The position numbers and the translations under genes are program-made. Under the pieces are notes generated by a model. That model was not told where the DNA came from. It worked only from the letters and a program-made list of their open reading frames with translations, and searched no databases. A stretch of DNA of 64,000 bases from Octopus sinensis (Eukaryota): NCBI RefSeq assembly GCF_006345805.1, contig NC_043010.1, forward strand, positions 5,890,001 through 5,954,000. Reading direction: 5' to 3'. Of this stretch, positions 19,425 to 64,000 are shown in pieces; the stretch's first letter is position 1; each line of letters opens with the position of its first letter.

Positions 19425-19667
19425 CAACAGTTGTCAATCGTTTATACAGTTGTCACAGTACCATTTCAAAGTTCTGGCAGCAAAGTTATTAATATTTTAG
19501 CTGGAGTTCTGAGTAGTTTGGTATGTGATAGTGTTATGCAGTTCTATCAATTTGGTTGCGTAGTAGTTAATGTGTATTGTCGCTGATGACAAGTTGTCTA
19601 TTATTCCAATGCAAGGAAACGGAGGTACAATCTCCAGTTCATACACTTTAATGATGGGCTGACCTAC
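19425..19667 (-). promoter_or_regulatory. Unit E: decayed promoter-like core (19579-19667) plus non-coding exon 0; donor GTAAGT at 19424-19419
   Basis: Homologous to the modules at 29543, 45622, 56749 and 63597. No PCDH coding exon is found to its left within the window. Confidence 0.65.
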
Positions 19668-20167
19668 AGATTAGTTCACTTAACACCAAACATTCACACA
19701 CTAATATACATATGAGTGTATGAATGTGTGTGAAAGTAAAATGTACAAAATTAAATCACTGGAAATATTTGATGTCCAGAATATTGAGGAGGAGAAACAG
19801 ACTCTCATGGAAAATTTTAATATTAAATATGTGAGATGTTGGGTAAAAACAAAAGAAAAAATATTTTCTGCAAGTTTTGTATTGAAGAGTAACAGATTAT
19901 TTCTCGAGCCACACTTAAAAAGGAAAGCCTAAACTCTATTCCCATAAAAAATAATGCTTAAAATGTTCATAAAATGACTTAAGAAAAAAGGAAAAGATTG
20001 TTTTAGGAATTACGAAACAGTGGCTATTAATAAACAAATATTAAAGCAGGAGCGACTCGTCTTAAAAATGCATATTCATAAGAAATTCATAAAATTCGGT
20101 CGATTGTCTCAATTTTTCTTATTCCCTAAATAGCCGAAAAGAATATTTAATGCTAATTTAAGTAAAT

Positions 20168-20568: not shown

Positions 20569-20894
20569 TTAATGTAATAGTATGGTGTTGTTTGGTGTAG
20601 ATAGAACAGGTACCTGAAGTACTGAGGGTACCTTTGGTAGCGTTGTTACTTTAGGTACAGCAGGTAGAGGTGGTTTATTATTTGAAGTAAAGACACTTGT
20701 CAATGGCGTTGTAGATGGTTGTTCAGTTATATTCAAAGGTGTTTGGTCAGGATGACAGACTGTGTTAGAATCAACGTTTGGTTGGTAAGTATATCCAGGG
20801 TATTGATTGTTATTATCTCCCCTCGATCTGTCCAGTGTGTGTGGAAGCTGTTTTCTCCTGTTCCATGTACGATCACTTTGGTAACAACACAGAT
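20569..20894 (-). CDS. PCDH: Protocadherin A, terminal exon 3 (cytoplasmic; DLCCYQSDRTWNRRK...KPPLPAVPK...ILLH*)
   Basis: Acceptor ctcttttatttctAG. The phase-1 start matches the phase-1 end of exon 2. Open for 108 aa to TAA. Homologues lie at 30793, 46873 and 58758. Confidence 0.85.
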
Positions 20895-22039
20895 CTAGAA
20901 ATAAAGAGATTTATATGTAATCTGATGCAATGAACTGTTAACAGAATGGAGAACATTAAATTTTTCTAATCATGAAAGGAATTTCAGTTATATATTACAG
21001 GCAAATCTGTACAGTTAAGAAGTTCTCACTTCAATCACATGATTTTGGGTTCAATCTCAATTACTGGTACCTTGAGCAAATGTATGGCACCAGGTCAACC
21101 ACAATTTTGCATGTGGATTTTGTGAATGGAAACTAAAAGCTCATTCAATATGTGTGCAAGCATGCATGCATGCATGTATGTGCACTTTAATTTTCCATTG
21201 TCACTTCTGTCAACTAATTATTCCCTTGGTTTCAGCCTTCAAAAACATGTGAAATAAGTAATCCTTTACTTGATAAAAAAAAACACTCAAATCTTCCGAA
21301 CTTCTTTAAAAAAAAAATTAACATTATTCTTCATCATATACATTTGTAGTCTTCACAAATACCTACTACATCTAATTCTTCTTATAACCAGCTTTTCTTT
21401 CAGCTCATCTGTGCTTCATAATTCAAACACACTAACATTACACAGCATGTAGAATCTGCTTGCTGCATCTCTTTACTCCTGATTGTTCCTATGCATCAGC
21501 AATATGTGAAGTTTTTCTTCTCAGCCAGCCTACCTCTGATCTTTACATATATATAGTATATTAAATATGGCTAAAAAAAACATGAACTCAATACATGCAA
21601 TGAAGAGAATATATTTTTCCTGGGAGAACTGAAGATATAATTTTTCACAGTAAATGATTTGGTTGATCTCTGTAGATAATCAACAGATAGTTGAATGCCT
21701 CTATCCTGAGAGGAAACTAGTGATTCACTATAAGGAATTATATCTTCAACACATACTCTCTCTCTCTACATATATATATATATATATATGTGTGTGTTTG
21801 TGTGTATATATATGTATGTATATATGTGTGTGCGCATGTGTATGTATTTATATGTATGTGTGTATTTATTTATACATACATGTATTTACATATATATAAT
21901 TAAATCAAGTATATAAAATCATCTTAAAGAGATATTAGCATCTAAGTTCCCCGGTTTAATCCAGTGTACCAGTGAAAAACCAATGATGGATATGGATATA
22001 TTACCATTTTTGTATGAGAAAAAGAAAACAGAGAAACTG

Positions 22040-23575
22040 ATATATAGACAAGGTGTGTGATGTGTTCACCTTTCTACTTACTAGAACTTTGGTCTTTGCA
22101 ACATTGACTCTAAGGCCTTTCAATCCTAAACCGTGCTTCCACACCTGAAATTTCTTCTCTAGTTCTGGTAGTGATTCTGCTATGAGGGCCAGGTCATCAG
22201 CATAGGGGAAACCTGTCTTGAAATCCTCTGTTATTGCCTGGAGGACTATGATGAATAAGAGGGGCTGAGGGCTGATCCTTGGTAAACCCCTACTTCTACC
22301 CAGAATTCTTCACTATACTCATTGTCAACCCTAACCTTCCTAACGGCATCTCTGTATAGGGCCTGTACAGCCCTTATTAACCATTCGTCAATTCCCAGTT
22401 TCTGCATCACCAAGCAGATAAGGGATCAGGGGACTACCAGGTTTACAATATGGGTGACTAGGACATAGCCCACACCACCAGATGTTTTAAGCATCTCAGC
22501 AGTGATTCCTGATGAGCCGGGGGCTTTTTCTGGCTTCATACTCTTAATTGCTTTATCTACCAAGGTACTGTCTATTCGGATAGCTGGTCCCTCTATTGGT
22601 CAACATTTGGCAGGCTCTCCTCCTCCCAATCATTCTCCACATTCAGCAGTCTTTTATAATGGCTTCTCCAAGCCTCTTTCTTTTCTGAATCATTAAAAGC
22701 AAGTGCACCATCATCCATTCAAACACATTTCTCTCCTGTGACACCACAATTTTCTCTCACACACTGTCACGCAATCCAAAATACTTCAGTTCTTTGGTCC
22801 TCATGTCGCTGGACATTAGCAAACATCTTTTCTGCCTTGCCCTTGGCATTGTATACCTGTCATCCAGCCTTCCTTCTGGCTATCTGGTACAGTTCCCTGC
22901 TGCACCCACCCTTCCATGCGTTCCAGGCCTGTTTCTTTACTCTAATGGCTTTGTCTGCCATATTATTCCACCACCACATAACTATGTCTGGAAGGGACTT
23001 TGCACCATCAGCAGACTTGGTCTGTGGTACTCAGTAAGCTGTCCCATAGGAATTTCCAGCTACCTTCTATATTCGAGGTCTGTAGCTCCTCCTCCCTCTC
23101 ATCAAATTTCTTGATGAGGATATCCTTAAACCTCTGACCATATGAAGGGTTCTTCAGCTTCCAAATCCTTCTTTTCTGGATTGGTCTGCTTCTTGGCATC
23201 CTTCTAGCCTCGAGCCTAAAGTCACTAATTACTAGTCTATGCTGGGGGGGTACATCCTTCACTAGGGAGGGTCTTTGTATTTAAGAGCAGCCTTGCATCC
23301 TGCTGTCTGGTGAGAATGAAATCAATCTGGCTATCAGAGTCACCTGATTGGTAGGTTATCAGGTGGCTGTCTGTCTTCTTAAGTTAGTGTTGCGGATTAA
23401 AAGGTTACATGCATAACAGAACTCCAGTAGCCTAGTTCCCTCATCATTTCGGGAACCAATGCCGTGGCCCCCATGTGCACCAGTGAAGATACCAAAATGC
23501 TGCCCAACATACCCATTAAAATCTCCAGCCACAATGATGAGGTCATTGCCACTCATCTTTGAGGTAGCCTGTTCT
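22040..23575 (-). mobile_element. Decayed RTE-clade LINE in PCDH-A intron 2
   Basis: IVAGDFNGYVG, QHRLVISDF, RIWKLKNP and YADD-region sequence are colinear with the 1-2032 element but carry stops and deletions. Confidence 0.9.
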
Positions 23576-24050: not shown

Positions 24051-24415
24051 ATACACACACACACACTACTACTACTACTTATATTTAAGCAAATTTAGAA
24101 AAATAAATTTTCTTCGACTGTAATGCACACACATTTGTGGTGACATTCCAAATAAAAGAGATGCTTTAACAGCATAAAAAGAGGATCTCTCACTCGTAAA
24201 ATTTAGCGTTTTTTTTAAAGATATTTACACATTTTCAATCTAAAAATTTTATTACAAGTGTTTAGCTTGCAACTATAATTGTAAAAGAAACTAGATCAAA
24301 CTCAAGAATTTTAGTCAGCAATGCTAAAATACTATCTACTGAATCATGCCAGTGTCTATTATAAACATTCGCAAACTCTAATAATTTGAAGAAAAACACA
24401 ATTATTCCAACTTAC

Positions 24416-24566
24416 CTGGCAGGGTTTCATAATGTCCAGCACTACCGACACTCCAGCCATGACTCCTATCTGTGTGAGAAGACAATGTTGACATTTCGCT
24501 GGTTTCATCGGCACTGCTTAGTTCTCTGTAGCCCGGAGACATACTTTCTTCTCTTGGAACAAACAT
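24416..24566 (-). CDS. PCDH: Protocadherin A, exon 2 (MFVPREESMSPGYRELSSADETSEMSTLSSHTDRSHGWSVGSAGHYETLP)
   Basis: ttttatgtttctAG acceptor and GTAAGT donor; 151 nt, phase 0 in and phase 1 out. The length is identical in all three genes. Confidence 0.88.
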
Positions 24567-24897
24567 CTAGAAACATAAAATAGATACATTGTATGCCATA
24601 ATATTTCATCATGGTATTTCTGTTTCCACATTTCAAGTTATATTGTCGTTCATAATCTCTCATTTTACTTTTAAACTGAAATATTCTAGAAATTCTCATG
24701 TGAGTCAGTAAAGAAAATTAAAAATGTAGATTCTAAATTACTCTTTAAGAAAAGAATTAATCAAACAGAAAAATAATTTTTCTTTTATATTCTGCAAAAC
24801 AGCTTCAAAGGTTCTTGGTTAATTACAGCCTGCTTTATTATTAACTATGGAATGTTGAAAGGAGAAATATTTTGAAATTAAAAGAAAATTATCTCAC

Positions 24898-27294
24898 CTG
24901 CTGATGACGTCTTAATGTTGGGTTATCCCATCTATTACCTAGCATGGTTCTGCAGTGAATATCTTCTCTGTCTACCATTGGTTGTTGGGATTTCTTCAGA
25001 TTTCTCGACATTGTGTATGAAATGCCAGGTGGAACACAAGTAGGATCAAATATATATTTTGATTGTGTGTTTAATGCAGGTGTAACCTTGTGGTACATAT
25101 CAACACTGTTGTTATAGTTGCTGTCTGTCTGCTTCAGTCTATGAACTATACAGATCGATATAGAGATCACTATGACAACTGATACGATCACAGCTGCTAT
25201 AACAATAACAATCATCACATTCAATTGGAGACCATTACTTGATTCTGTTGTTGTCTTTGAAGGGGTCTTAAATATCTTTGATGTGGTGTTACTCACTGTT
25301 AGAGTCAAAGACAAAGTTGTTGTCGATGACAGAACTGGACTGCCACTGTCTTTCACACCTAATTCCAGTTCATAGAATCCAGCATCATTTTGGTAAAGTG
25401 AGCGAGAGAAAGATAAGACACCAGAGTGATGGTTCATTTGAAATAAGTGTTTCTCATTACCTCTGAGTATTTCATATGTGAGGAAGGCATTGTGTTGACT
25501 GTCTCTGTCGGAGGCCCTAACAACTGTGATATCATGGTCAGAGTGGGGATGGTAGTGGACATTAAGACTGAAAGGGTCAACATTAGGGAAACTGAAATAG
25601 GGAGCATTATCATTTAAATCCATAACCTCAACAACAACATTTGCTCTCTTCTCCAGTGACGGTGTTCCTTTATCTTTTACTAAAACCTTGAACTCATACA
25701 GGTTCTTTTCTTCTCTGTCTAGGGACTCAGTTGTGGAAATGAATCCCACATCAGATATCTGAAATGGTAGAATATCTTTTCCATTAGATAATAGAGAATA
25801 GGTTAATTGTCCTCCATCTCCAATATCTGGGTCTGTGGCATTGACATATCCAACAGGGAAGTCTTTGTGTTCATTTTCATAGGTGAGAAACTTAAATATG
25901 TCCTGACTAAACTGAGGTTGTACATCATTTATGTCAGTAACCAGCATAGAAAACTGTTTCTCTACTTTCAACGGAGGTAAACCATTATCTTGACATTTAA
26001 TGGTGAAATTAAAGCTCTTTTCACTCTCTCTATCTATTTCACTCTTGACAACAACTTTGTATTTCTTTTCAGACACTGAGATTAGCTGAAGGTATTTATT
26101 ATGTAAATGACAGTTCACTTGTCCATTTTTTCCACCGTCATTGTCGGTAACTTTGACATAAGCAACAAAACTGCCAATTTTAGATGCTTCTGAGATGACA
26201 GCTGTGTTTCCAGTTGACTTTAAAACAAATTTGACATCAATTTTGGGGGGATTGTTAAGGTGAGTGATACTATTTACAACAACAGTCACTACAGAAAATT
26301 TGGAAGGATTACCATTATCTCTGGCTTCAATAAACAATTTATAGACTTTTCCAAACTGAAATTCGTTTGTTATATATATTTCTCCAGAAGTTTGATTTGA
26401 AATGAATTTTTTTCGTTCAGTTTCTGAGATAACAGGGCTGAAACTATACACAATTCTTCCATTATCCCCTTCATCTAAATCTGTTGCTGTTAATTTGATA
26501 ATGGGCTTGTTCTTACTGTGTGTATCATTTACTGTTACATTATATATACTTTGAGAGAATACAGGAGCATTATCATTTTTATCTCTCACTAATATTTTTA
26601 TGTCCAATACACTTTCCTTTGATGGTGATCCTCCATCTGCTGCAATTAGTTGAAGAGCATAACTTTCCTTTTTCTCTCGGTCAAGTTTCCCACCCAATAT
26701 TAATTCAATGTTACTTTGCCTATCAGAAATACTTGAGACTGACAACTGGAATATATTTTCGTGGTTATTCCTCAGTTGATAAGAAATTTCGGAGTTCTCA
26801 ATACTGACATCTTTGTCAAAGGCATTTGGAATAATTTCTTTTATTCCCATGGGTACATTTTCATCAAATTTTAAATGAAATTCCTTGTCCGGAAACATGG
26901 GAGAATTATCATTGACATCTTCTATCATAACTTTGATTTCTAATATCTTCATAAAAGAATGGCCTTCTTGAACTGCTATTTCCAATATCCTGAAACATTC
27001 CACATCATATTGACACAGAGATTCTGCATCCAATATGGCAGCTGTGTACAGTTGTCCTCCAGGTGTAACATTAAACAATTGAACACTTCCATCAGTACTA
27101 CCCTGGAGTATTTTAAATGTCAGTTTGTCCTGTGACTGTATATTATCCAGTAAGTGTGTATCAGTAACAATATCTCCAATATAGCTGTTTATATCATTGT
27201 TCTCTTTCACATGGTAGGTATGGTCCACACACCAGCAGCTCTCGGCCATCAACATCACAATCATCAACAACACTGACAACATGACTTCAGTCAT
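24898..27294 (-). CDS. PCDH: Protocadherin A, exon 1 coding part (signal peptide, EC1-EC6, TM, proximal tail; 799 codons); full protein 957 aa
   Basis: Cadherin motifs DVNDNSP, LDRE, DKNDNAP, DINDVQP and DLNDNAP; TM ~692-717. Acceptor tttttttttttaatttcAG lies 20 nt before the ATG (exon starts 27314). Donor CAG|GTGAGA. The track ORF reads 2 codons into the intron. Confidence 0.97.
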
Positions 27295-27639
27295 TTAAGC
27301 ATTAAATCAAAAAACTGAAATTAAAAAAAAAAACCTGGGTAAGATTTTATGTAATACCAAAGATTTTCAATAATTTAGTCAATGTATTATGATTCCAGCC
27401 ATTACATAATCCTTTTCTAATTGTTAATTCTCTATCTCAGGTGTATATTCAATTTTGATTTGGACATTCTCTTTGTATTGCTTATCTCCTCAATACAATT
27501 ACTATGATTATATTAAACTGTTAATAGACTCAACTTCCTCCAACCTATTCTTATTCAAGCTACTACACTTTCATAACATCCTTTTCACTGCTAATTTGGT
27601 CACTTAGGTAACAGAAAATATTGACAACCTCTTGGAAGC

Positions 27640-28850: not shown

Positions 28851-29542
28851 CTGATTTTGGTTTAATACTGATATCCAAGTGGACAGAAACCAGAGAGGAA
28901 GTGTTGACTGGGCAATCAAATCTCATAAAAATCCAAATTTTTTGTAAAATTTCTTGAGGTGATTTACATCACAATATATATATAATCTGGTAGTTTTGTC
29001 TAAAGGATATTATACCACAAGCCAAAATACTGTCAGTAATCTCATTGTCATGCTAAATACATAGTCAGTAAATTTATTGTGACACTGAAAATATTAAATG
29101 CTTAAAAGGTTAAGGATAAGCAAAAGTGAAACTAAATTAAAACAATAAACTTTAGTTTGTTACAATATGTTACTTAAACCAAAACCTCTCTCATCATCAT
29201 CATTTAATGTCCGTTTTCCATGCTGGCATGGGTTGGACGGTTTGACCCAAAACTGGTAAGCTAGGGAGCTGTACCAGGTTCTAACCTGATTTGGCAAGGT
29301 TTCTACAGCTGGATGACTCAGTTTTCTTAACCTTTTGTAAACAATATTACTTTGATAATTAGTAATAAAAATTTATAATGAAATAACTGAGTATTTTATT
29401 TAAGTTTTTCATTAACTTCAATGTAACAGTATTGAAGTTATGACATTATCTCTGTTACTGATAATATTGTTTCAAGTGAAAAGATCCTTATTATAAAATA
29501 GTCAAATTATACTAAACAAAAATAATATAAATAAGTACTTAC

Positions 29543-29777
29543 CAACAGTTGTCAGATGTTCATACAGTTGTCACAGAACTGTTTCAAAGTTCTTGCAACA
29601 AAGTTGTTGTTATTGTTACAAATGGAGTTCTCAAAAGTTTGGTATGTGTTATGCAGTTCTATCAAGCTGGTTTGTATGGTAAGTGTGTTGTAGCCAATGA
29701 CAAGCTGTCTATTATTCCAATGCAAGGAAACGGAAGTACAGCCTCCAGTTCTTGCAGTAAATGATGGGCTGACTCAC
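29543..29777 (-). promoter_or_regulatory. PCDH-A promoter-like core (29690-29777) and non-coding exon 0; donor GTAAGT at 29542-29537
   Basis: 88-nt block with TGACTCA, GGAA, two CCAAT and a TGACAAGCTGTC near-palindrome, followed by a perfect donor. Exon 1 has an acceptor just before its ATG and so needs an upstream exon. Confidence 0.75.
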
Positions 29778-30792
29778 AGACTGGTTCACATAACACAACA
29801 CACTAATATACACATAAGTGTATGAATGTGTGTGTAAGTAAAATGTACAAAATTAAATCACAGGAAATATTTGACGCTCAGAAAACTGAGGTTGAGAAAT
29901 AGACTCGCATGGAAAATTTTGATATTAAATATTTGTGAGATGTTGGATGAAAACAAAAAAAAAAAATTTTTGTGCAAGTTTTGTATTAAAGAGTAATAAA
30001 CAATTTCTAAAGCCACGCTTAAAAAGGTAAGCCTAAAATGTATTCCCATAAGAATATGGAAATAAAATATGAATTAAAAATATGAATGTTTATAAAGTGA
30101 CTTTTTAAAAGAAAAAAGCATTTACGAAACAGTGGCTCTAAATAAACAAATATAAAAGTAAGAGCGACGCGCCTTAAAAAGGCATTTTCATAAGAAATTC
30201 ATAAAGTTTGGTCGATATTCAGAGTTTTTCTCTTCTCATTAAAGATATTCGTTTTATATGGAATCGTAAAGTTTATATTTAAGGTATTTAGTATAAAGAT
30301 TAGAGGTAGAAGAAATAAAAATATTCATTGAGGATATATCGAATTTAATTCCCTAAATAGCCGAAAATATATATTTAACGCTAATTTAAGTAAATTTTAT
30401 TGAAAGTTTCGGGATTATTTACGTTATCAAAATCTGTATTTTGAAGAAATTGTTGACAAATTTTCTTCGTTAAGAAAATATTTTTAAAAAAGGTAAACAA
30501 TAATCAAGGGAGGTAACTGTTAAAAACTGTTATACAAAGCAATCAGGAATGGAATTTAGGAATAATATTACTGAACGGGATTATATCTCACACACATTCC
30601 AGAATTGGTAAACACGAGTGTGTGTGTGTATATATACACACACACCTGTGTTTACAAATTGTAAAATATATGGCTCTTGTTTTCTGTCAAAGATAAATTC
30701 CCAGGAATATCATTCAATACTTTAAAATAATGGTAGTAACCGTTTCAAAAAGGTTTAAGTAATGCCTTATTGATGACAATAATATTTTAGTG

Positions 30793-31139
30793 TTAATGTA
30801 ATGCTATGGTGTTGTTTGGTGTAGATAGAACAGGTACCTGAAGTACTGAGGGTACCTTTGGTAGTGTTGTTACTTTAGGTACAGCTGGTAGAGGTGGTTT
30901 ATTATTTGAAGTAAAGACACTTGTCATTGGCGTTGTAGATGGATATTCAGTTATATTAGATGTGGTACCAGTTATATTCAAAGGTATTTGGTCAGGATGA
31001 CAGACTGTGTTAGAATCAATGTTTGGTTGGTAAGTATATCCAGGGTATTGATTGTTGTTATCTCCCCTCGATCTATCCAGTGTGTGTGGAAGCTGTTTTC
31101 TCCTGTTCCATGTATGTTCAATTTGGTAACGACACAGAT
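30793..31139 (-). CDS. PCDH: Protocadherin B, terminal exon 3 (115 aa)
   Basis: tttctAG acceptor; 347 nt, in frame to TAA; DLCRYQIEHTWNRRK...IALH*. Confidence 0.85.
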
Positions 31140-32199
31140 CTAGAAATATATAAATTTATAGGTTATCTGATGCCCCAAACTGTTAACAGAATGGAGAACA
31201 TTACATTTTCCTATCCATGAAAGGAAAGGAGTTCCCTCTGCAACCACATGGTTTCAAATTCAGTCTCACTACTTTGCACCTAAGAGGTCACCTAAAATTT
31301 TACATGTGGGTTTAGTAGACGGAAACTAAAAGAAGCCCGTTCAGTCTGTGTTCATGAATGCACGTGTATGTGTGTGTGTATGCGCATGTGCATTTATGTT
31401 CTATTGTCACTTCTGTCAATAACATTATTATTCAGTATCTACACTTACGTAGTGGTTGGCGTTAAGGAAGGGCATCCAGCCGTAGAAACACTGCCAGATA
31501 AGACTGGGCCTAATGCAGCCTTCTGGCTTCACAGACTCCAGTTGAACCGTCCAACCCATGCTATCATGGAAAACAGACGTTAAATGATGATGATGATATA
31601 TCTTTGTGGTCTTCTCATATGTCCACTATATCTCAACCAGATTTTCTTTCAGCCCATTTGTGCTTCATATTTCATCTTTATAATACTAAAACTCTAGAGA
31701 TGTTTGTGTGTACCCCAAATATCTCAGAAACAGTATATTTTATCTTAATGTTTTTTGCCTATCTCTTTTCATACTTACCTGCAGGAGTGCAGTACAAATT
31801 TTTGTGATATTTGGGACTATTTGTTAATTAGACAGAGTTTTTTTGTTATTTCTTGATGAAAAATACATCTCTGCTGTGACATCAACACACATGCAGAATA
31901 CACATACATATAATGAATGTCATGGCTTGTCAACACAAACACACGTCTACTACCTATGACATATGCACACACATAGTCTTCATACTCTCTAAGAAAAAAA
32001 AGAAAAAACCTTGACTGTTTGACGTACACAATATCTTATTCATTCAGAAATATTCTTAACTGAATGTGATTTCAAAAACAGAATATTTTGATGTTTTTTT
32101 TAATTATTTTCAAGTGAATGGCAATCTGTTGCTTATCATCCAAAGTTCATTAATTTCTGTAAAAATTTTTTATTTATTTACTTTTTTTCAAAGTGAACA

Positions 32200-32872
32200 A
32201 GAGGAGAAAGTGAAAGATGTATGTACGTGTATATGAAATGGACATATGTGTGTGAAAAAGAGAGAGAGAAAGAGAGTAAAGGGATGTGTTGTCATGTGTA
32301 CGTACATACATCAATACATATGCATACACCTTCTTCGTACGTACATGCGCATGAGAGAGTGAGTGAGTGAATGTCTGTGTTCTCATTGCGCACACAGACA
32401 AACACACACACACACACACACATCTATTTCATATACATGTTCATACATCTTTCAAATTTGCCTCTCTTTCACTTTAAAGCAAATGTAAATAAATAAAAAT
32501 GACAGTTCTGAGAGTAAAAGCGAAAGATTGCCCCAAGGGAATACCATTACAAAATATTTTTCGAGTGCATTCAATGTATCTCAGCTCCAAAGATTTCGCT
32601 GCTATTTCTAGTATGCTCTGCCAGCCCGTAACAACTATTTGCGATAAAGGACCGGAAATACCTGTTATGTGGTAGCAAGGCGTGCAAGAAATAGCAGCCG
32701 AATCTTTCCTTTTCTGGGGAAAGAAGCTGTTTACACGTGATTTTGATGTCACATTCGTTGAAAGCATGCGAAATAAACTGGAATATAAAGTAGAAAACAC
32801 GAAACAAAACTCCATTGCTGGGAATCTCAGACTTTCCGTGTGACCCAACGGGTCACAGGTAGTCTAGTACAC
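32200..32872 (+). mobile_element. Non-autonomous Helitron/Helentron-like element; a copy lies at ~48280-48950
   Basis: Ends in hairpin tgtgaccc-aac-gggtcaca followed by CTAGT; CpG-rich interior. The left boundary is approximate. Confidence 0.5.
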
Positions 32873-33772
32873 ACTAACATTGCACATGCAGTAGAGTCTG
32901 CTTGCTTAATGTTTTGCATATCATTTCGAATCTTCTAAATCCTAGTTCCACTTCTCATTTCCACAAATCAATTCACTTCCATACACAAGCATTATACACT
33001 CTTACTTCTCGCAATTAAAGGCAGTTATGTCTTCCTACTAAATGATCCTGGGTATCAGCCATATGTGAAGTCTTCCTTCTCTGCCAGCCTATCTATGATC
33101 CTTACATATATATTATACTAAGCATAGATGAAAAAAAAAAAAAGAACTCAATACATGAAATGAAGGCAATATGTTTTTCAAGAGGAATTGAAGATATAAT
33201 TCTTTCCAGAAATTGATTAGTTTGATCTTGGTATATAATCACCAGACAATTGAATGATTCTTTACTGAGAGGATTCTAGTCAGTCATTATAAGGAATTAT
33301 ATCTTCGGCACTTGTTCTCTCTCCAGAAGAGAGAAAGATTGTTGAGTAGCTTTTTCTTTTGTTTGTTCAGTCCGGTCACTGGTACATATATATTATATAT
33401 ATATATGTATATATATACAGTATATGTTAAAGAAGAAAATTGAGAGTTTTAATATACCTTTATCTTTTATTCGTTTCAGTCATTTGACTGTGGCCATGCT
33501 GGGGCACTGCCTTTAGTTGAGCAAATCGACCGCAGGACTTATTCTTTGTGAGCCTAATACTTATTCTATCGGACTCTTTTGCTAAACCACTAAGTTACAG
33601 GGATGTAAACACACCAACATCGGTTGTCAAGTGATGGTGGGGAGATAAATATGGACACAAAAACATACACACGCATATATATATATACATGAGGGGCTTC
33701 TTTCATTAATTAATGACTTTATCCTAATTATGCATTAAATTATAAATATATGTCACGTTTAGAAACATTCAG

Positions 33773-33774
<2 letters not shown>

Positions 33775-33850
<76 letters not shown>
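33775..33850. repeat. (CT)n(AT)n microsatellite; its paralogue at 49853-49943 has different lengths
   Basis: Direct reading. Confidence 0.9.
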
Positions 33851-33854
<4 letters not shown>

Positions 33855-34282
33855 TAAATACACAAACACACAGATATATTATACACATATACCCATACAA
33901 ACATGCACACACACACACACAAGTTTTTCTTTTGTAAATTTATATTTTTATATTTTGACTCACATGCACAAATTTTGGTAGTAACTCTCCAAATGAAAGA
34001 GATATTTTAACAGCAAAAAACAAGAGGATCTTCTCACTCACTGTAGTAAAGTTTTGTTCTTTTTTAAAGGCTTCCATCAACAAAATTATATTACAAGTGT
34101 TAGTTTAGCTTGAAACTACAAATGTAAGAGAAACTAGATGAAAATATTAAGCACCAGGATCAAACTCAGTATTTTAACATTGCTGACTAAAATTCTTATC
34201 TACTAAACCATTCTAGTGACTATTATTATAAACATTTGCAAACTCTAATGATCTGGAGAAAAACACAATTATTCCAACTTAC

Positions 34283-34433
34283 CTGGCAGGGTTTCATAAT
34301 GTCCAGCACTACCGACACTCCAGCCATGACTACTATCTGTGTGAGAAGACAAGATTGACATTTCACTGGTTTCGTCAGCACTGCTTAGTTCTCTGTAACC
34401 CGGAGACATACTTTCTTCTCTTGGAACAAACAT
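34283..34433 (-). CDS. PCDH: Protocadherin B, exon 2
   Basis: 151 nt, AG/GTAAGT, open phase 0 to phase 1. Confidence 0.88.
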
Positions 34434-34764
34434 CTAGAAACATAAAACAGAAAGATTGTATGCCATAATATTTCATCATGGAATCTTTGTTTCCACATTT
34501 CAAGTTATATTGTCGTTCATAATCTCTCATTTTACTTTTAAACTGAAATATTCTGGAAATCCTCATGTAAGTCAGAAAAGAAAATTAAAGAGTAATTTAG
34601 AATCTACATTTGTAAGATAAGAATTTATCAAATAGAAAAATAATTTTTCTTTTATATTCTGCAAAACAGCTTCAAAGGTTCTTGGTTAATTACAGCCTGC
34701 TTTATTATTAACTATGGAATGTTGAAAGGACAAATATTTTGAAATTAAAAGAAAATTATCTCAC

Positions 34765-37161
34765 CTGCTGATGACGTCTTAATGTTGAGTTATCCCATCT
34801 ATTACCTAGCATGGTTCTGCAGTGAATATCTTCTCTGTCTACCATTGGTTGTTGAGATTTCTTTACATTTCCCTTCAATGTGTACTGAATCCCAGGAAGA
34901 ACACAAGTGGGATCAAATATATATTTTGATTGGACGTTTAATGCAGGTGTAACCTTGTGGTACATATCAACACTGTTGTTATAGTTGCTGTCTGTCTGCT
35001 TCAGTCTATGAACTATACAGATCGATATAGAGATCACTATGACAACTGATACGATCACAGCTGCTATAACAATAACAATCATCACATTCAATTGGAGACC
35101 ATTACTTGATTCTGTTGTTGTCTTTGAAGGGGTCTTAAATATCTTTGATGTGGTGTTACTAACTGTTAGAGTCAAAGACAAAGTTGTTGTCGATGACAGA
35201 ACTGGACTGCCACTGTCTTTCACACCTAATTCCAGTTCATAGAATCCAGCATCATTTTGGTAAAGTGAGCGAGAGAAAGATAAGACACCAGAGTGATGGT
35301 TCATTTGAAATAAGTGTTTCTCATTACCTCTGAGTATTTCATATGTGAGGAAGGCATTGTGTTGACTGTCTCTGTCAGAGGCCCTAACAACTGTGATGTC
35401 ATGGTCAGAGTGGGGATGGTAGTGGACATTAAGACTGAAAGGGTCAACATTAGGGAAACTGAAATAGGGAGCATTATCATTTAAATCCATAACCTCAACA
35501 ACAACATTTGCTCTCTTCTCCAGTGATGGTGTTCCTTTATCTTTTACTAAAACCTTAAACTCATACAGGTTCTTTTCTTCTCTGTCTAGGGACTCAGTTG
35601 TGGAAATGAATCCCACATCAGATATCTGAAATGGTAGAATATCTTTTCCATTAGATAATAGAGAATAGGTTAATTGTCCTCCATCTCCAATATCTGGGTC
35701 TGTGGCATTGACATATCCAACAGGGAAGTCTTTGTGTTCATTTTCATAGGTGAGAAACTTAAATATGTCCTGACTAAACTGAGGTTGTACATCATTTATG
35801 TCAGTGACCAGCATTGAAAACTGTTTCTCGACTTTCAATGGAGGTAAACCATTATCTTGACATTTAATGGTGAAATTAAAGCTCTTCTCACTCTCTCTAT
35901 CTATTTCACTCTTGACAACAACTTTGTATTTCTTTTCAGACATTGAAATAAGCTGAAGATATCTATTTTGTAAATGACACTTCACTTGTCCATTTACTCC
36001 ATTGTCATTGTCAGTAACTTTGACAAAAGCAACAAAACTGTGAATTTGAGTTCCTTCTGAGATGACAGCTGTGTTTCCAGTTGACTTTAAGACAAATTTG
36101 ACATCAATTTTGGGAGGATTGTTAAGATGACTGATACTATTTACAACAACAGTCACTACAGAAAACTTGGAAGGATTACCATTATCTCTGGCTTCAATAA
36201 ACAATTTATAGACTTTTCCAAACTGAAATTCGTTTGTTATATATATTTCTCCAGAGGTTTGATTTGAAATGAATTTTTTTCGGTCTTTTTCTGAGATATC
36301 CTGGCTGAAACTATACACAATTCTTCCATTATCCCCTTCATCTAAATCTGTTGCTATTAATTTGATAATGGGCTTCTCTTTACTGTGTGTATCATTTACT
36401 GTTACATTATATATACTTTGAGAGAATACAGGAGCATTATCATTTTTATCCCTCACTAATATTTTTATGTCCAATACACTTTCCTTTGATGGTGATCCTC
36501 CATCTGCTGCAATTAGTTGAAGAGCATAACTTTGCTTTTTCTCTCGGTCAAGTCTCCCACCCAATATTAATTCAATGTTACTTTGCCTATCAGAAATACT
36601 CGAGACTGACAACTGGAATATATTTTCATGGTTATTCCTCAGTTGATAAGAAATTTTTGAGTTCTCAATACTGACATCTTTGTCAAAGGCATTTGGAAGT
36701 GTTTCTTTTCTTCCTTTTGTTGCACTTTCATCAAACTGTATATTAAAGTCTTTGTTGGGAAACATGGGAGAATTATCATTGACATCTTCTATTATAACTT
36801 TGATTTCCAATATCTTGATAAAAGAATGGCCATGTTGAACTGCTATTTCTAATATCCTGAAACATTCCGCATTATATTGGCACATAGTTTCTGCATCCAA
36901 TATGGCAGCTGTGTGCAGTTGTCCTCCAGGTGTAACATTAAACAATTGAACACCTCCATCAGTGCCACCCTGGAGTACGTTAAATGTCAGTTTGTCCTGT
37001 GACTGTATATTATCCAGTAAGTGTGTATCAGTGACAATATCTCCAATATAACTGTTTATATCATTGTTCTCTTTCACGTGGTAGGTATGGTCCACACAAA
37101 GGCAGCTGTTAGCCATCAACATCACAATTATCAACAACACTGACAACATGGCTTCAGTCAT
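34765..37161 (-). CDS. PCDH: Protocadherin B, exon 1 coding part (799 codons); full protein 964 aa
   Basis: Six cadherin repeats plus TM; acceptor ttttttttttttatttcAG (exon starts 37181); donor CAG|GTGAGA. Confidence 0.97.
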
Positions 37162-38638
37162 TTAAGCATTAATTCAAATAACTGAAATAAAAAAAAAAAA
37201 GTAGGTAAAATTTTATGTAATACCAACTATTTTCAATAATTTAGTCAATGTATTATGATTCCAACCATTACATAATCCTCTTCTAATTTTTAATTCTCTA
37301 TCTCAGGTGTATATTCAATTTTGATTTGGACATTCTCTTTGTATTGCTTATCTCCTCAATACAATTACTATGATTATATTAAACTGTTTGTAGACTCAAC
37401 TTCCTCCAACCTATTCTTATTCAAGCTACTCTTTTACTTGTTTCAGTCATTTGAATGAGGCCATGCTGGAGCACCACCTTTAGTCGTGCAAATCAACCCC
37501 AGGACTTACTCTTTGTAAGCCAAGTACTTGTTCTATCGGTCTATTTTGCCAAACTGCTAAGTTATGGGGACATAAACACACTAGCATTGGTTGTCAAGCG
37601 ATGTCCTATAACATCATTTGAACTCTCATCACTGAGTGGGTGAGTGGCATTGAGAGAGGTACATTAAGTCACCTATCTCAATAGCTCTCATGCTCTCAGT
37701 TGAGGGAGTTTTGTCTTGCAAGTTAACATGGTGCAACATAAAAAGCACCCATTGCACTCTATAAAGTGGTTGGTGTTAGGAAGGGCATCCAGCCATAGAA
37801 ACAATGCCAAAGCTGGCAGTACAGCTTGCACACTCCTCTGATGTATTCACTTCTGTCAAACTGTCCAAACCATGCCAGTATTGCAATCAGATGCTAAATG
37901 ATGATGATGATTGGTAATCACAGATATATGTTCATAAAAGCTAGAGATATCTCAAGAGATTTTGAAGTCATGTAGGCCTTGATGAGGTTGCACTGCTGGT
38001 AATTTTGACATATTGAAAGGGATGATCTTAAATCTGCTGTTATGGAATGAGTTAAAAAGCGATTCTGAGGACCTTGTAGTTTCTATGCCCAGAAACTGGC
38101 TTGAAACTTAGTTATACACTACAATTGGTTATTTCATAAGACAGAACAATAAAAAGCAACTTTCAATGACATTTAAAGTTCACTGATAGTGTAACCTTTG
38201 GCACTTTTCTATGCATTTGGTTCATAATGTGTTATGGCAGTGAGCTATGAGAAGGAAGTATGATCACTGACAAGGTTTCACATCCAAAGAATTCAGCAAT
38301 AGATCACCAAACAGAAGATAGGATATTCTCAAAAGAAACAATTCATCAGTCAATGTCAGTAAGTTTATAACATAGCACCAGCTGGAGCAATCATAGTTCA
38401 CCTGATTTTGGTTTAATACTGATATCCAAGTGGACAGAAACCAGAGAGGAAGTGTTGACTGGGCAATCAAATCTCATAAAAATCCAAATTTTTTGTAAAA
38501 TTTCTTGAGGTGATTTACATCACAATATATATATATAATCTGGTAGTTTTGTCTAAAGGATATTATACCACAAGCCAAAATACTGTCAGTAATCTCATTG
38601 TCATGCTAAATACATAGTCAGTAAATTTATTGTGACAC

Positions 38639-39165
38639 CCCTACCTGGGACGTAGTCAGTCCACACCTGTGCATACCTTCCTTCTTGTGACACTTGTGAA
38701 GACCTGTTGAGGCAAGTGAAAATCAAAATCAAAATCAAAATCAAATCAAATCAAAATAGATGAACATCAATGGAATTTGTATCTTTGTGGTACCAGTGCC
38801 GGTGGTATACAAGAAAACCATCCGAACGTGGCCGTAGCCAGTACCTCATCGACTGGCCTCCTTGCTGTGGGCACGTAACAAACACCATCCGATCGTGGCC
38901 GTCTGCCAGCCTCATCTGGCACCTGTGTCGGTGGCACATAAAAACACCATCCGAGCGTGGCCGTCTGCCGGCCTCATCTGGCACTGTGTCGGTGGCACAT
39001 AAAATCACCCACTACACTCTCGGAGGGGTTGGCGTTGGGAAGGGCATCCAGCTGTGGAAACACTGCCAGATCTGACTGGCCTGGTGCAGCCTTCGGGCTC
39101 CTCAGACCCCAGTTGAACCGTCCAACCCATGCTGGCATGGAAAGCGGACGTTAAATGATGATATA
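38639..39165 (+). mobile_element. RTE-tail/VNTR retroposon
   Basis: gaagacctgttgaggcaagtga leader, several ggtggcac-taaaa-accatccg units, ggaagggcatccagc body and a GAT tail. Confidence 0.8.
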
Positions 39166-39210
39166 TATGTATATAATATATATATATATGTGTGTGTATA
39201 TATATATATA

Positions 39211-39597
39211 GGCGCAGGAGTGGCTGTGTGGTAAGTAGCTTGTTTACCAACCACATGGTTCCGGGTTCAGTCCCACTGCATGGCACTTTGGGCAAGTGTC
39301 TTCTACTATAGCCTCGGGCCGACCAAAGCCCTGTGAGTGGATTTGGTAGACGGAAACTGTATATATATGTATATATATATATGTATGTGTGTGTTTGTGT
39401 GTCTGTGTTTGTCCCCCTAGCATTGCTTGACAACCGATGCTGGTGTGTTTACGTCCCCGTCACTTAGCGGTTCGGCAAAAGAGACCGATAGAATAAGCAC
39501 TGGGCTTACAAAAGAATAAGTCCTGGGGTCGAGTTGCTCGACTAAAGGCGGTGCTCCAGCATGGCCGCAGTCAAATGACTGAAACAAGTAAAAGAGT
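39211..39597 (+). mobile_element. tRNA-derived SINE, near full length
   Basis: ggcgcaggagtggctgtgtggtaag...ggttcagtccc...gactgaaacaagtaaaagag. Confidence 0.85.
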
Positions 39598-39694
39598 ATA
39601 TATATTGGGAGAGTTCACGAAAAAAACAAAAGACAAAGACAGGTGGTGTACAAAACAAATAGGTGTATTAGTATAACGCTCAGGAATAGAAAAA

Positions 39695-39736
39695 GTCTTT
39701 TACGTTTCGAGCCTACGCTCTTCTACAGAAAGGGAC
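39695..39736 (-). ncRNA. Minimal type-I hammerhead ribozyme-like motif (core variant)
   Basis: Sense cttt-CTGTAGA-A-gagc(gtag)gctc-GAAAC-GTA-aaag. The topology is exact, but the core reads CUGUAGA instead of CUGANGA. Confidence 0.45.
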
Positions 39737-40189
39737 ACAGAAAAAACAAGGAGAGAAAAAAAATATATATATATATATATATTATGTGAAATAGAAAGAT
39801 GAATAATCTTGTAGTAGATTAATCAAAAGTTTAACCGATACCTTAGTAGCAAAAATCACAGCAGTGATTTCTTCAATTCACCAATATATATATATATATA
39901 TATATACTTTATTTGAGGGAAGCGGAAGTGTGACTAAGGCTGTTGCTCAGTTTCATATTCCCGTTCGTTGTTTAAAAAAAATAAAACTGTCCGAACGGGA
40001 ACGTGAAACTTTGAGTAGCAGCTTTTGTTATGTTTCTGCTGCTTTTGAATAAAGCATATTACTCTACCTCTGGTGTTTGAGTACTCCTTTTTTCCACCTT
40101 GTTTCACATTTATGTGCTTACTCTGATATGTATATTATAAATATAAACTATACTGACTTTGTAAAGTACAACCAAGTCATATTTTTAGT

Positions 40190-40745
40190 TCATCATCATC
40201 GTCGTTTAACGTCCGCTTTCCATGCTAGCATGGGTTGGGCGGTTCAACTGGGGTCTGGGAAGCCAGGAGGCTGCACCAGGCTCCAGTCTGATCTGGCAGT
40301 GTTTCTAAAGCTGGATACCTGTCCTGACGCCGACCACTCTGTGAGTGTGGTGGGTGCTTTTTATGTGCCACCGGCACAGGGGCCAGAGGAGGCTGGCAGC
40401 GGTCGCAATTGGTTGGTGCTTTTTATGTGCCACCGGCACAAGCTAGCCAAGGCAGCGCTGGCATCTGCCATGTTCGGATGGTGCTTTTTACGTGCCAGGT
40501 GAGGCTGGCAACGGCCACGACCGGTCGGTGCTTTTTATGTGCCACCGGCACAGAAGCTAGCCAAGGTGGCGCTGGCATCTGTCACGTTCGGATGGTGCTT
40601 TTTACGTGCCACCGGCATGAGTATCACAACTACAATTCCATTTGATTTTTACTTTGATGTTGATGTATTTGACTCAGTAGGTCTCCTCAAGCACAGCAGT
40701 TCACCCCACGATCCAAGGTAAGCACTGCAGGCCGTCCTACGATCC
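40190..40745 (-). mobile_element. RTE-tail/VNTR retroposon, inverted relative to its neighbours
   Basis: Reverse complement of the family body with about 4 VNTR units. Confidence 0.8.
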
Positions 40746-41009
40746 AATGGGCTGGTTGTGTGAAGCTGGTTGTAGGATACAGCCATGAACTCACTTTGTT
40801 GGGTATATCTTAATTATTCTTTGTCTTCTCTGCAAGAGTTAATCCAAGTGAATGCAGTTGGTTGTCTCTTAGATGTGATTTGTTACTAATAACCTCTCCA
40901 CGTCTTATCTCATTCTCAGTTCATTCTAGTCTAACTCTTGCCATATCTCAGCTGCTCATATGTAGACCAAACTCAGTATCTTATTTTTTTGATATTGCAC
41001 TATCCGATT

Positions 41010-41300
41010 TCGTGGCCGTTGCCAGCGCCGCCTCGAATGGCTTCCATGTGCAGGTGGCACGTAAAAAGCATCAATCCGACCGTGGCCGATGCCAGCCTCG
41101 CCTGGCACCAGTGCAGGTGGCACGTAAAAAGCACCCACTACACTCACGGAGTGGTTGGCGTTAGGAAGGGCATCCAGCTGTAGAAACATTGCCAGATAAG
41201 ACCGGAGCCTGGTGCAGCCTTCTGGCTTTCCAGATCCCCGGTCGAACCGTCCAACCCATGCTAGCATGGAGAACGGACGCTAAACGATGATGATGATGAT
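41010..41300 (+). mobile_element. RTE-tail/VNTR retroposon
   Basis: VNTR units, body and (GAT)n tail. Confidence 0.8.
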
Positions 41301-41754
41301 GTTTGGTCAGAGGTAAATGGGAAAAACCAGTTGCCATGAATCAAGTGAAAAGAAGTTGTTCTGACATTAGGTACCTAATCCGCATGCTCGGAATAGAATA
41401 TACTCTATTAAAAGCTTTCAAAGGAAAGATGGTTGTGTTGAATCAACTGAAGGGTAAGCTTTGCCACCCTACAATGGAAGCCGTCTCTGCTGGTCTTCGA
41501 AACTTAAAGATTCTATTTAGAGAGCATAAAAATGGGCTTTTTTTTTTTCTTTTTGTTATGTCAAATATATGATATTTTCTGGCATACAAGTCAAATATTT
41601 TGAGATGAAAATTTAGAGCCAAAAAAGGTAGGTCAACCAAGAATTCTTTGGTGGATCAAAAATTCCATGTGAAATGCAGCAGGATTTGGAAAGACAGTGA
41701 CGATGTGTGAATGTTTACACCAGATACTACATCAAACTTGTAAGCCGGAAAATA

Positions 41755-42300
41755 TGGTAAAAAGCACCATCCGTTCGTGGCCGTTGCCAGTCTCGCCTGG
41801 CCCCCGTGCCGGTGGCATGTAGAAAGCTCCATCCGTTCGTGGCCGTTGCCAGCCTCGCCTGGCCCCCGTGTCAGTGGCATGTAAAAAGCACCATCCGTTC
41901 GTGGCCATTGCCAGCGCTGCCCCGACTGGCCTCCGTGCCGGTGGCACGTAAAAGCACCATCCATTCATGTCCGTTGCCAGCCTCGCCTGGTGCCGGTGAC
42001 ACGTAAAAGCACCATCCGTTCGTGTCCGTTGCCAGCCTTGCCTGGTGCCAGTGGCACGTAAAAGCACCATCCGTTCGTGGCTGTTTGCCAGCTCCGTCTG
42101 ACACCTGTGCGGGTGGCACGTAAAAAGCACCTACTACACTCGCGGAGTGGTTGGCGTTAGGAAGGGCATCCAGCCGTAGAAACACTGCCAGATCAGACTG
42201 GGCCTGATGCAGCCTTCTGGCTTCACAGACCCCAGTTGAACCGTCCAACCCATGCTAGCATGGAAAACGGACGCTAAATGATGATGATGATGATGATGAT
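41755..42300 (+). mobile_element. RTE-tail/VNTR retroposon with ~6 VNTR units
   Basis: Repeats of aaagcaccatccgttcgtggccgttgccagcctcgcctgg...gccggtggca, then body and (GAT)n tail. Confidence 0.85.
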
Positions 42301-43270: not shown

Positions 43271-43549
43271 GTCGTAAATGAGTATCATCATGCAAATGAT
43301 TTCCATTTCTCGTCTTCCATGAAAACATGTCTAGTCAGTCATGTCTGGAAACAGGTGAGGATTAGCAAATTGCATCCAGCCATAGAAAATTAGCCTCAAT
43401 AAAATTCCATCTGACGCATGCAGGTATGGAAAAGTGGTTGTTAAACTGATGATGGTCATGAAATGCAGGTAACAAAAGGGTTAACCTGTAAACAGAAACC
43501 CAGACTTTCAGTGTTGTATTTATAGATTCTGCTGTGATTTCCTTTATTT

Positions 43550-49849: not shown

Positions 49850-49953
<104 letters not shown>

Positions 49954-56748: not shown

Positions 56749-56990
56749 CATCAGTTGTTAGTTGTTTGTACTGGTGCAACTGCTCTATTTGAGTGTTCTG
56801 ATTACAAAGTTATAGTAGCAGCAGCAGTTCTGAGTAGGTTGGTACGTGATAGTGCTATATAGCTCTATGAAGTTGGTCGTTAGTTAGTACGTCATGTTTG
56901 TTGTAGCCAATGACAAGCTGTCTATTAGTCCAATGCAAGGGAATGGAAATACAGCCTCCAGTTCTTGCAGTTAATAATGGTCTGACTCAC
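56749..56990 (-). promoter_or_regulatory. PCDH-C promoter-like core (56903-56990) and non-coding exon 0; donor at 56748-56743
   Basis: 81/88 identical to the A core with no gaps; the flanks are much more diverged. Confidence 0.75.
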
Positions 56991-57933
56991 AGACTAGTTC
57001 ACTTTCACCACATGCACATGTGTATGTATGTGTGTTAGAAGAATGTACACAAATGAATAAGGAAGAAAAGTTTAATATTCGGAATGGAGAGGATAGGCAA
57101 TAAATTCAATATGGAAAATATCATTTCTCAATAATTATAGCATATTTTTTTTTAAATCTGAGAAAACTGGTTTTAAAGACTAAGGTGTTACCCAATCTAA
57201 AACAGTTTTTTTTTAATAAAATGAGTATAGAATATGTTCCTTTAAAAATAAAATTCATAAGTAGTTTAAAGCAATATTATAAAATAGCTACAAAATTATG
57301 TCAAGAAACTTTTGAAAAGGCGGTGCTCCAGCATGGCCACAGTCAAAAGGCGGTGCTCCAGCATGGCCAAGTAAAAGAGTGGCTATCAATAAACAAATGT
57401 GTGCTCAATTGGAATGTGGGGAAACAGAAATGTGGAAAACCCACTATTGCTCTTTTGAAATTAAAACTGCAATTTAATAGATTTTGTTAGAATAAACAAT
57501 AATAACGAAGAATTCCTAATGAAAAGAACAGAACTATTAGAAAACAACTAACTTGTACAAGTGCTAACTACTGCAGTGGAATATGGATTAAATCTCTGAT
57601 TTCAAGAAAAACATTAACATTAGTATTCTGGGAAAATGTTGACTGAGAATATACAATATTACAAGAATATGATTGTAAGGTTTGAGAAGATTACAATTCC
57701 AAGCAGGAGATATACAGAAACATTAGAATATTGGACGAAATGTCTGCATAATTTAGTCAGATTATTTTACACTGAGTTCAAATTGCAATGTGGTTATCTT
57801 TAACATAACATTGGTAGAAAAAGATGAAATGCAAAATAGAGATCAAAAAATATAGTTGATTTAACCTCTAGCAGACAGTGGTAGGGGGAAACAATTCTAG
57901 AGTAAATGCAGAATGCTAAAGGTTAATGTTCCT

Positions 57934-63596: not shown

Positions 63597-63825
63597 CAAC
63601 AGTTGTCAGTTGTTTGTTCTGTTGTTGCTGTGCTGTTTCAGTGTTCTGATAACAAAGTTGTAGTAGTAGCAGAAGTTTGGTAAGTGATAGTGTTATACAG
63701 TTCTATGGAGTTGGTTGTGTAGTGTGTAATGTGTGTTGTAGCCAATGACAAGCTGTCTTTTATTCCAATGCAAGGAAACGGAAATACAGCCTCCAACTTT
63801 TGCAGTTAATGATGGGCTGACTCAC
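63597..63825 (-). promoter_or_regulatory. Unit D promoter-like core (63738-63825) and non-coding exon 0; donor at 63596-63591
   Basis: 82/88 identical to the A core with no gaps. Confidence 0.72.
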
Positions 63826-64000
63826 ATACAGTATCACTTAGGCCCACATACACTTGTGTGTGTGTGTGTGTGTTAGTAGAGTGTACATAAATGAACAAGG
63901 AAGAAATGTCTAATATCTAAAATGGAAAGGATAGGCAATAAATTCAGTATGGAAAATGTTATTTCTAAATAATGATTATATAGTTTATAAATAGTATAAG

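Follow-up and report, generated by a model that had tools for sequence, protein, structure and literature searches.

A conserved promoter-like block and non-coding leader exon recur with tandem protocadherin genes in octopods

Octopods have about 160-170 protocadherin genes, and a 64,000-nucleotide (nt) stretch of the Octopus sinensis genome (contig NC_043010.1, positions 5,890,001 to 5,954,000; hereafter the window) holds three intact ones in tandem, interleaved with a short non-coding element. By sequence match, positions 20793-47161 of the window agree at 100% with chromosome CM016872.1 (GCA_006345805.1), window position p falling at p + 5,890,000 of that record. An earlier note on this DNA had described the element as promoter-like and as a candidate counterpart of the conserved sequence element (CSE) of the vertebrate clustered protocadherins. 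What is the element, and how far does the vertebrate comparison hold, given that the octopus and vertebrate protocadherin expansions are independent (PMC4978886, PMC9712504)? Our analysis confirms the observation and supports the interpretation in part. We consider it likely that each copy is a shared RNA polymerase II proximal promoter, with AP-1-, ETS- and NF-Y-type sites, joined to the non-coding exon 0 of a tandem octopod protocadherin gene. In the literature searched, a scope that did not take in the 2015 octopus genome paper, we found no description of a shared octopod protocadherin promoter element.

A conserved core and the exon attached to it

Five copies of the element lie in the window, at 19579, 29690, 45769, 56903 and 63738 (copies A to E, in that order), all on the minus strand, as the genes are; every figure given for them in the earlier note proved exact. 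A profile of the 88-mer originally described (nhmmer) returned precisely these five, with E values of 1e-25 to 1e-30, and found no weaker copy in the 64-kb window. The 12-mer core GACAGCTTGTCA has five matches in the window against 0.35 expected. Four copies align without a gap, 29690 matching 45769 at 88/88 positions, 56903 at 81/88 and 63738 at 82/88, and copy 19579 has a 1-nt indel. The GTAAGT donor follows each 88-mer at 141-154 nt, within the range of about 140-155 nt reported before.

The 88-nt element is real, and its limits were drawn too narrowly. The conserved block measures 107 nt, beginning about 12 nt upstream of the 88-mer and running 7 nt past its end, and in the alignment similarity continues beyond it through exon 0, the last 25 nt of which are conserved, into a TTG/GTAAGTA donor (slashes mark splice junctions). 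The conserved unit is a 107-nt core, a non-coding exon 0 of 134-147 nt and an invariant GTAAGT donor, and its copies in the window are as follows (G1 to G3 are the protocadherin genes described below).

29683..29789, minus strand: core of copy B, putative proximal promoter of G1; nhmmer E=8e-37, two differences from the subfamily consensus, contains the 88-mer 29690-29777
29543..29682, minus strand: exon 0 region of copy B, non-coding leader by alignment, with stops in all frames near the donor and only 1 ATG
29537..29542, minus strand: GTAAGT donor of copy B exon 0; the homologous O. vulgaris donor is joined to the next gene's leader in protein model P0016
45762..45868, minus strand: core of copy C, putative promoter of G2, identical to B; exon 0 45622-45761, donor 45616-45621, intron 0 about 8.4 kb
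56896..57002, minus strand: core of copy D, putative promoter of G3; exon 0 56749-56895, donor 56743-56748, intron 0 about 3.5 kb
63731..63836, minus strand: core of copy E, intact, with no exon 1 after it; exon 0 63597-63730, donor 63591-63596
19572..19679, minus strand: core of copy A, the most degenerate, with 16/107 differences; exon 0 19425-19571, donor 19419-19424

Copies 29690 and 45769 are not independent, because both sit in a 9.3-kb segmental duplication of 97.4% identity (29084-38393 = 45163-54485), which carries a whole gene, the next element and its exon 0.

Conservation and distribution among octopods

We located related genomic loci (labelled L002 to L012) by protocadherin protein search and scanned them with the element profile, which covered about 0.4 Mb of octopod DNA including introns rich in transposable elements. 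This yielded 12 further full-length copies outside the window: three in O. bimaculoides (L002), two in O. vulgaris (L004), three in O. sinensis at L008, which lies 60 kb higher up the cluster, and four in Argonauta hians (L003). Counting those in the window, the subfamily has 17 copies in four species, each in the orientation of the genes. Copies alternate strictly with genes: the order at every locus is element, exon 1, exon 3, element, and the element lies 0.6-2.1 kb past the preceding last coding exon and 1.5-8.6 kb ahead of the next ATG.

The conservation of the core exceeds that of the neighboring coding sequence. Mean identity between Octopus and Argonauta, for which shuffle baselines are 50-55%, is 85.5% in the 107-nt core (range 76-91%), compared to 54.5% in the 200 nt upstream of it, 62% in exon 0 and 58% in the first 200 nt of the intron; in the same comparisons coding exon 1 reaches 77-79% and third codon positions 68-71%. 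The non-coding core is therefore evolving more slowly than the adjacent coding exon across two octopod families. Seventy of its 107 columns are invariant in 15 copies (copy 19579 left out), and the 17-mer ACAGCTTGTCATTGGCT, which holds the CCAAT box, is unchanged in 15 of the subfamily's 17 copies and recurs unaltered in the divergent copy at L006. Gene conversion could account for likeness within a species and not for likeness between two families. A shared promoter among tandem duplicates is to be expected; what is notable is a 107-nt block conserved above the coding level across two families and several subfamilies.

These data leave hardly any room for the idea that the element is a dispersed repeat or transposon fragment, or that its copies resemble each other neutrally through recent duplication or gene conversion, and we regard it as largely refuted. 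Both processes do occur here, as copies 29690 and 45769 are identical only owing to the segmental duplication, and the second halves of paralogous exon 1s are homogenised within species, so conversion operates in the cluster. However, neither process accounts for a core conserved between two families beside flanks at shuffle level, or for one that is more conserved than third codon positions. Each intergenic interval has a single copy, oriented as the genes are in every case, and none falls within long introns or stretches rich in transposable elements; no extra or dispersed copy unlinked to protocadherins turned up on either strand of the roughly 0.4 Mb. Divergent homologues, moreover, adjoin paralogues of about 50% protein identity.

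The earlier claim that the element precedes every protocadherin unit holds for the subfamily, in which one element precedes each of the 12 exon 1s (12/12) whose upstream DNA reaches far enough, and gives out beyond it. Two divergent homologous copies adjoin the paralogues of about 50% identity just mentioned: one at L007 4974-5088, which is 4.9 kb upstream of its ATG and has its own GTAAGT donor, and one at L006 49357-49467. Five more distant genes (the gene of L006 itself and those of L009, L010, L011 and L012) lack a detectable copy in the 10 kb before the gene; these have a strong acceptor 25-57 nt before the ATG, which suggests that their first exon is farther off or has diverged. A Logan transcript contig of a 52%-identical paralogue (L005) carries an unrelated 182-nt 5' untranslated region with no element and is uninformative, and a 24-mer taken from the core had no match in a metagenome scan.

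Within the window, an intact gene lies downstream of only three of the five copies (B, C and D). Downstream of copy 63738 there is no exon 1, only a minisatellite and an exon-3-like remnant at 58770-59100; its O. vulgaris orthologue (L004 7824) has a gene 2 kb downstream. The minisatellite has a unit of about 20 nt (CTGGTGCCACATAAAATGCA) and occupies 59624-61189 (about 1.5 kb); together with a related array of 54-nt period at 62163-62380 it fills the site where exon 1 of this unit would be expected, and the long open reading frames (ORFs) there are repeat artefacts. For copy 19579, the 19.4 kb of window left downstream gave no protocadherin exon by tblastn. This is the most changed copy, with TGAGTCA altered to TAGGTCA and CATTGGCT to CATCAGCG at columns that are invariant in the other 15 copies. 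Decay in exactly the AP-1 and CCAAT motifs would look like the picture expected of relaxed constraint on an orphan promoter.

Motifs, splicing and competing explanations

The core carries several motifs that would be at home in a promoter. In the 88-mer, TGAGTCA starts at position 2, TTCC at 43 and 49, ATTGG at 57 and 80 (23 nt apart) and GACAGCTTGTCA at 69. Judged by consensus, TGAGTCA(GC) would be an AP-1 or CNC-bZIP type site, ACTTCCG a high-affinity ETS core on the opposite strand, and CATTGGCTAC, read on the opposite strand as AGCCAATGAC, appears to be an NF-Y site meeting the whole consensus RRCCAATSRS. The TGASTCA, ACTTCCG and RRCCAATSRS matches are present and conserved at fixed positions, and are consensus matches only, so that the factors named here are candidates. 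Distant paralogues have TGACTCA where the subfamily has TGAGTCA; the swap of the central base between G and C keeps the palindrome TGASTCA, which points to recognition as double-stranded DNA.

Other motif proposals fared less well. The pair of CCAAT boxes is not ancestral, as the first ATTGG is replaced by CATGGGAAC or CTTGGGAAC in Argonauta and in both distant paralogues, and the suggested paired TALE half-sites founder on a left half-site that varies (GACAG, CACAG, AACAG). The motif scan that the earlier note had recommended finds conserved AP-1-type and NF-Y consensus matches and no CTCF consensus in any element: allowing up to 2 mismatches, CCASYAGRKGGCRSY has five matches in the window against 2.4 expected, none of them inside an element, the closest (62884-62898) lying about 0.7 kb downstream of the donor of copy 63738 and within its intron. 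We also dropped EBF/COE, RFX and STAT as readings of the CATGGGAAC block, and a TATA-like YATAAC combined with a TCAGAAC initiator, where matches were imperfect or not present in all copies.

Exon 0 is non-coding, in agreement with the earlier note. Its lengths differ by 6, 7 and 13 nt, not all multiples of three; stops occur in all three frames close to the donor, within 3-10 codons in most copies; and the exon 1 leader has stops in all three frames as well. Together, the stops near the donor and in all leader frames rule out a coding exon 0. The exon is A/C-rich and G-poor with 9 ATGs against 27 expected, flanks being at expectation, a depletion that is supportive and not significant because the copies are related and the test overstates significance.

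At the other end of intron 0 are three intact minus-strand ORFs of 801 codons (24889-27294, 34756-37161 and 50827-53232), the exon 1s of protocadherin genes arranged head to tail. Each encodes a Cadherin_2 and five Cadherin domains (Pfam), and exons 2 and 3 follow within 6.4 kb as judged by tblastn of NCBI protein P0001. The corresponding features are listed here.

24895..27294, minus strand: G1 exon 1, ectodomain and transmembrane segment, amino acids (aa) 1-800; exon 2 24396-24566, exon 3 20572-20895 (tblastn of P0001, Pfam)
27295..27316, minus strand: G1 acceptor (AG 27316-27315) and 20-nt leader; polypyrimidine tract and TTTCAG 20 nt before the ATG, intron 0 about 2.2 kb
34762..37183, minus strand: G2 acceptor (AG 37183-37182), leader and exon 1 (ATG 37161); exon 2 34263-34433, exon 3 30796-31140; this gene is NCBI protein P0001
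50833..53254, minus strand: G3 acceptor (AG 53254-53253), leader and exon 1 (ATG 53232); exon 2 50378-50527, exon 3 46876-47220

Every gene in the window thus has a polypyrimidine tract and TTTCAG 20 nt before its ATG. All octopod protocadherins examined (L002, L003, L004 and L006-L012), with or without the element, have a strong polypyrimidine tract and CAG acceptor 7-104 nt before the ATG, and a spliced non-coding first exon therefore appears to be general in the octopod protocadherin family.

Use of the exon 0 donor is seen in one transcript model. Its protein, P0016 of O. vulgaris (RefSeq), has the C terminus LPNRLSIPE/NTETAQQQQNKQLTTVG/QSKGISPHNK followed by the stop codon, and on L004 (6880-9931) these residues trace a path from the exon 3 donor GAG/GTACCT to an acceptor inside exon 0 (TTATCAG/AAC), then from the exon 0 donor GTTG/GTAAGT to an acceptor TTTTCAG/GAC located 104 nt upstream of the next gene's ATG. 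As the junction residues offer no protein homology to steer a predictor, the junctions were presumably derived from transcript evidence, and they indicate that the exon 0 donor is used and joined to the leader of the following exon 1. A conserved non-coding block directly upstream of a spliced exon 0 is what a promoter with its leader would present: the block is an island between flanks that cannot be aligned from Octopus to Argonauta, the donor is used in P0016, and acceptors await it at each gene. To this extent the description of the element as promoter-like is upheld.

Based on these features, we propose the following model. AP-1/CNC-bZIP, ETS and NF-Y type sites at fixed spacing in the core would direct transcription from a start 40-80 nt downstream of the CCAAT box, in the first half of exon 0. 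The resulting A/C-rich, ATG-poor leader would end at the invariant TTG/GTAAGT donor and be spliced across an intron of 2.2-8.4 kb to the TTTCAG acceptor 20 nt before the ATG of the ectodomain exon. The module may in this way give the paralogues a common, probably neuronal, regulatory input.

Several points count against this model, in addition to the overstated test on ATGs. As each preceding gene ends about 1 kb before the element, location by itself fits either a promoter or a 3' boundary. Transcript evidence comes solely from one read-through model, which begins in the gene upstream and shows donor use, not initiation. In one gene model at L006 the acceptor falls within the core (TTTGCAG/CAAGAATCTAA), so part of the core can be exonic. 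Copy 63738 is intact despite having no exon 1 after it. A canonical TATA box was not found in the element region, and the candidate initiator TCAGAAC (CTCAGAAC, about 65 nt past the CCAAT box) is deleted in copy 63738, which means that the position of the start site cannot be set from the sequence.

Gene models that cross units recur in these clusters. P0005 (1091 aa) joins the cytoplasmic tails of two units, there are fused models of 6653 aa and 1906 aa (L008 1-5498 and L003 17838-23929 are among the spans), and P0018 (L006 49380-49403) ends 3 codons past an acceptor within the next unit's core element. They agree with the read-through PCDH transcripts, and the gene fusions resulting from them, reported in O. 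vulgaris (PMC9712504).

Such models raise an alternative at the RNA level, in which the block belongs to a transcribed bridge or leader exon of RNAs spliced from unit to unit and acts in splicing or translational control, not as an initiation site. We judge this unlikely, though the least so of the alternatives to a promoter. Beyond the frequency of conjoined models and the published transcripts, it would fit the conserved final 25 nt of exon 0 and the scarcity of ATGs in the core itself. Folding speaks against it: there is no stable or covarying structure, and a structured RNA was rejected with z = -0.13 relative to shuffles, a covariation term of -0.31 kcal/mol with 3/22 pairs compensated, and no Rfam match at E <= 1. 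In the subfamily, the annotated read-through RNA picks up the unit only past the core and thus lacks the most conserved part, and the G/C swap that preserves TGASTCA as a double-stranded palindrome has no obvious meaning in RNA. Finally, the core of Argonauta and of the distant paralogues contains CCATGG, which in a transcribed core would form a strong upstream start codon.

Could the element instead be a boundary of the upstream gene (a terminator, pause site or insulator) and not the promoter of the downstream gene? It does follow each stop codon at a fairly constant 0.6-2.1 kb, and read-through is evidently a problem in these clusters, judging by the fused models and the published transcripts (PMC9712504). 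Nevertheless, it is spaced far more tightly from the exon 0 donor (134-147 nt in Octopus, at most 179 nt in Argonauta) than from the upstream stop codon, the CCAAT, ETS and AP-1 content is typical of promoters, and the lack of a CTCF-type consensus in any element offers no support for an insulator. In addition, L003 copy 835 stands 1.5 kb upstream of a protocadherin ATG with no protocadherin coding exon in the preceding 835 nt. We therefore regard a boundary role as more doubtful than an RNA-level one. The DNA before that copy holds only the last 66 nt of a 143-aa gene call.

Returning to the promoter-and-leader reading, the earlier note had gone further and suggested that near-identical promoters would allow stochastic or enhancer-limited isoform choice by a convergent route. 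In this scheme each module would be an address: near-equivalent promoters would compete for limiting input, and, with exon 0 non-coding and read-through frequent, the activated one could also be spliced to the exon 1 of a downstream unit. The idea that exon 0 could be joined to the exon 1 of other units agrees with the conjoined models and with the read-through transcripts in the literature (PMC9712504). In single-cell data about 19 PCDHs are found per cell, some of them ubiquitous and some restricted to cell types (PMC9712504). We see the complete scheme as improbable, only slightly behind the RNA-level role in standing. If it were true, octopods would have a route to neuronal protocadherin diversity through promoter choice and cross-unit splicing that evolved independently of the vertebrate CTCF/CSE system. 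The module offers a direct way to ask whether octopus protocadherins use promoter competition of the vertebrate kind, and it presents concrete mutable targets for experiments in the CCAAT 17-mer, the TGASTCA site and the ETS site. The 107-nt profile is also useful for annotating true 5' ends and for separating fused gene models.

Comparison with known systems and other features of the cluster

The CSE of vertebrate clustered Pcdhs is a conserved promoter element (Wu et al. 2001) bound by CTCF and cohesin (Kehayova et al. 2011), as both are cited in PMC4978886. Like it, the octopus module is a short conserved non-coding element that each tandem unit has once, oriented with the gene and at a set distance from the transcript start (a predicted one here), and that is common to subfamilies of a lineage-specific expansion. 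The resemblance ends there. The CSE has a CGCT box, whereas the octopus 88-mer and the 107-nt consensus have none, and the two share no sequence similarity; it has a CTCF site, whereas the octopus elements lack the consensus and have AP-1, ETS and NF-Y types as candidate factors. A CSE lies about 200 bp from the ATG and is contiguous with its variable exon, while the octopus elements are 2.4, 8.6 and 3.7 kb away across exon 0 and an intron. Vertebrate variable exons are joined to shared constant exons, and the three genes in the window each have their own exons 2 and 3. The proposal that the element is a counterpart of the CSE does not stand: as far as sequence features can tell, the octopus module is analogous in organisation only, not in sequence or CTCF mechanism, and is not a member of that family.

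By analogy of structure, the mammalian odorant-receptor gene seems the closest match. In these genes a multi-kb intron separates a non-coding 5' exon from the only coding exon, and O/E and homeodomain sites are shared. Like the octopus units they form a large tandem family with a big coding exon, a leader spliced just before the ATG, and shared motifs upstream of the leader. Their promoter motifs are short, loosely placed and different, in contrast to the rigid octopus block with its 70 invariant columns, and one gene per cell is established for odorant receptors compared to the roughly 19 PCDHs per cell reported in octopus (PMC9712504). A third parallel is provided by the chelicerate sDscam genes, whose 5' cassette arrays have alternative promoters (Yue 2016; Cao 2018, as cited in PMC6339937). 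Like the octopus cluster these are invertebrate arrays of neuronal recognition receptors with tandem units each thought to own a promoter. However, sDscam cassettes are joined to shared constant exons, whereas each octopus unit is a whole gene, and splicing between units shows up only in read-through models.

The coding exons of the cluster show a pattern of their own. The second half of exon 1, from about VKCHLQNRYLQLIS and spanning roughly extracellular cadherin domain (EC) 4 to the transmembrane segment, is near-identical among paralogues (window, L008, L004 and L002). Between G1 and the gene at L008, for example, identity is 73% over the first half and 95% over the second. The contrast suggests that the membrane-proximal half is kept alike by gene conversion or is under strong constraint, with EC1-3 diversifying, a pattern that recalls the vertebrate clustered Pcdhs.

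Elsewhere in the family, distant protocadherin gene models span 19-39 kb (L006 10001-49403, L007 10001-43291, L009 10001-28738, L011 10001-29046). The small 3' exons of these models are 20-30 kb away from exon 1, and the interval holds no second exon 1 (in L006, exon 2 is at 32657-32839 and exon 3 at 41375-41452).

The remaining features of the window reflect rearrangement and repeats. A truncated exon 1 fragment (54489-54578; 90 nt, aa 4-33, 70% identical) lies between copy D and G3 just past the upstream edge of the 9.3-kb duplication, by which an older exon 1 was apparently truncated. The length of G2 intron 0, 8.4 kb, is due to a repeat array at 38800-45160 that sits inside it; the array (also seen at 2060-2373) is GC-richer (0.40-0.47 G+C), holds direct and inverted copies of one repeat of about 300 nt and a 187-codon ORF (42765-43328), and is probably derived from transposons. 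Two further GC-richer segments, 3-1762 and 22119-23544, are 73-79% similar to each other, and one of them lies within the intron between G1 exons 2 and 3. They are probably remnants of long interspersed nuclear elements, and a short minus-strand ORF at 23008-23262 resembles a fragment of a retroelement protein.

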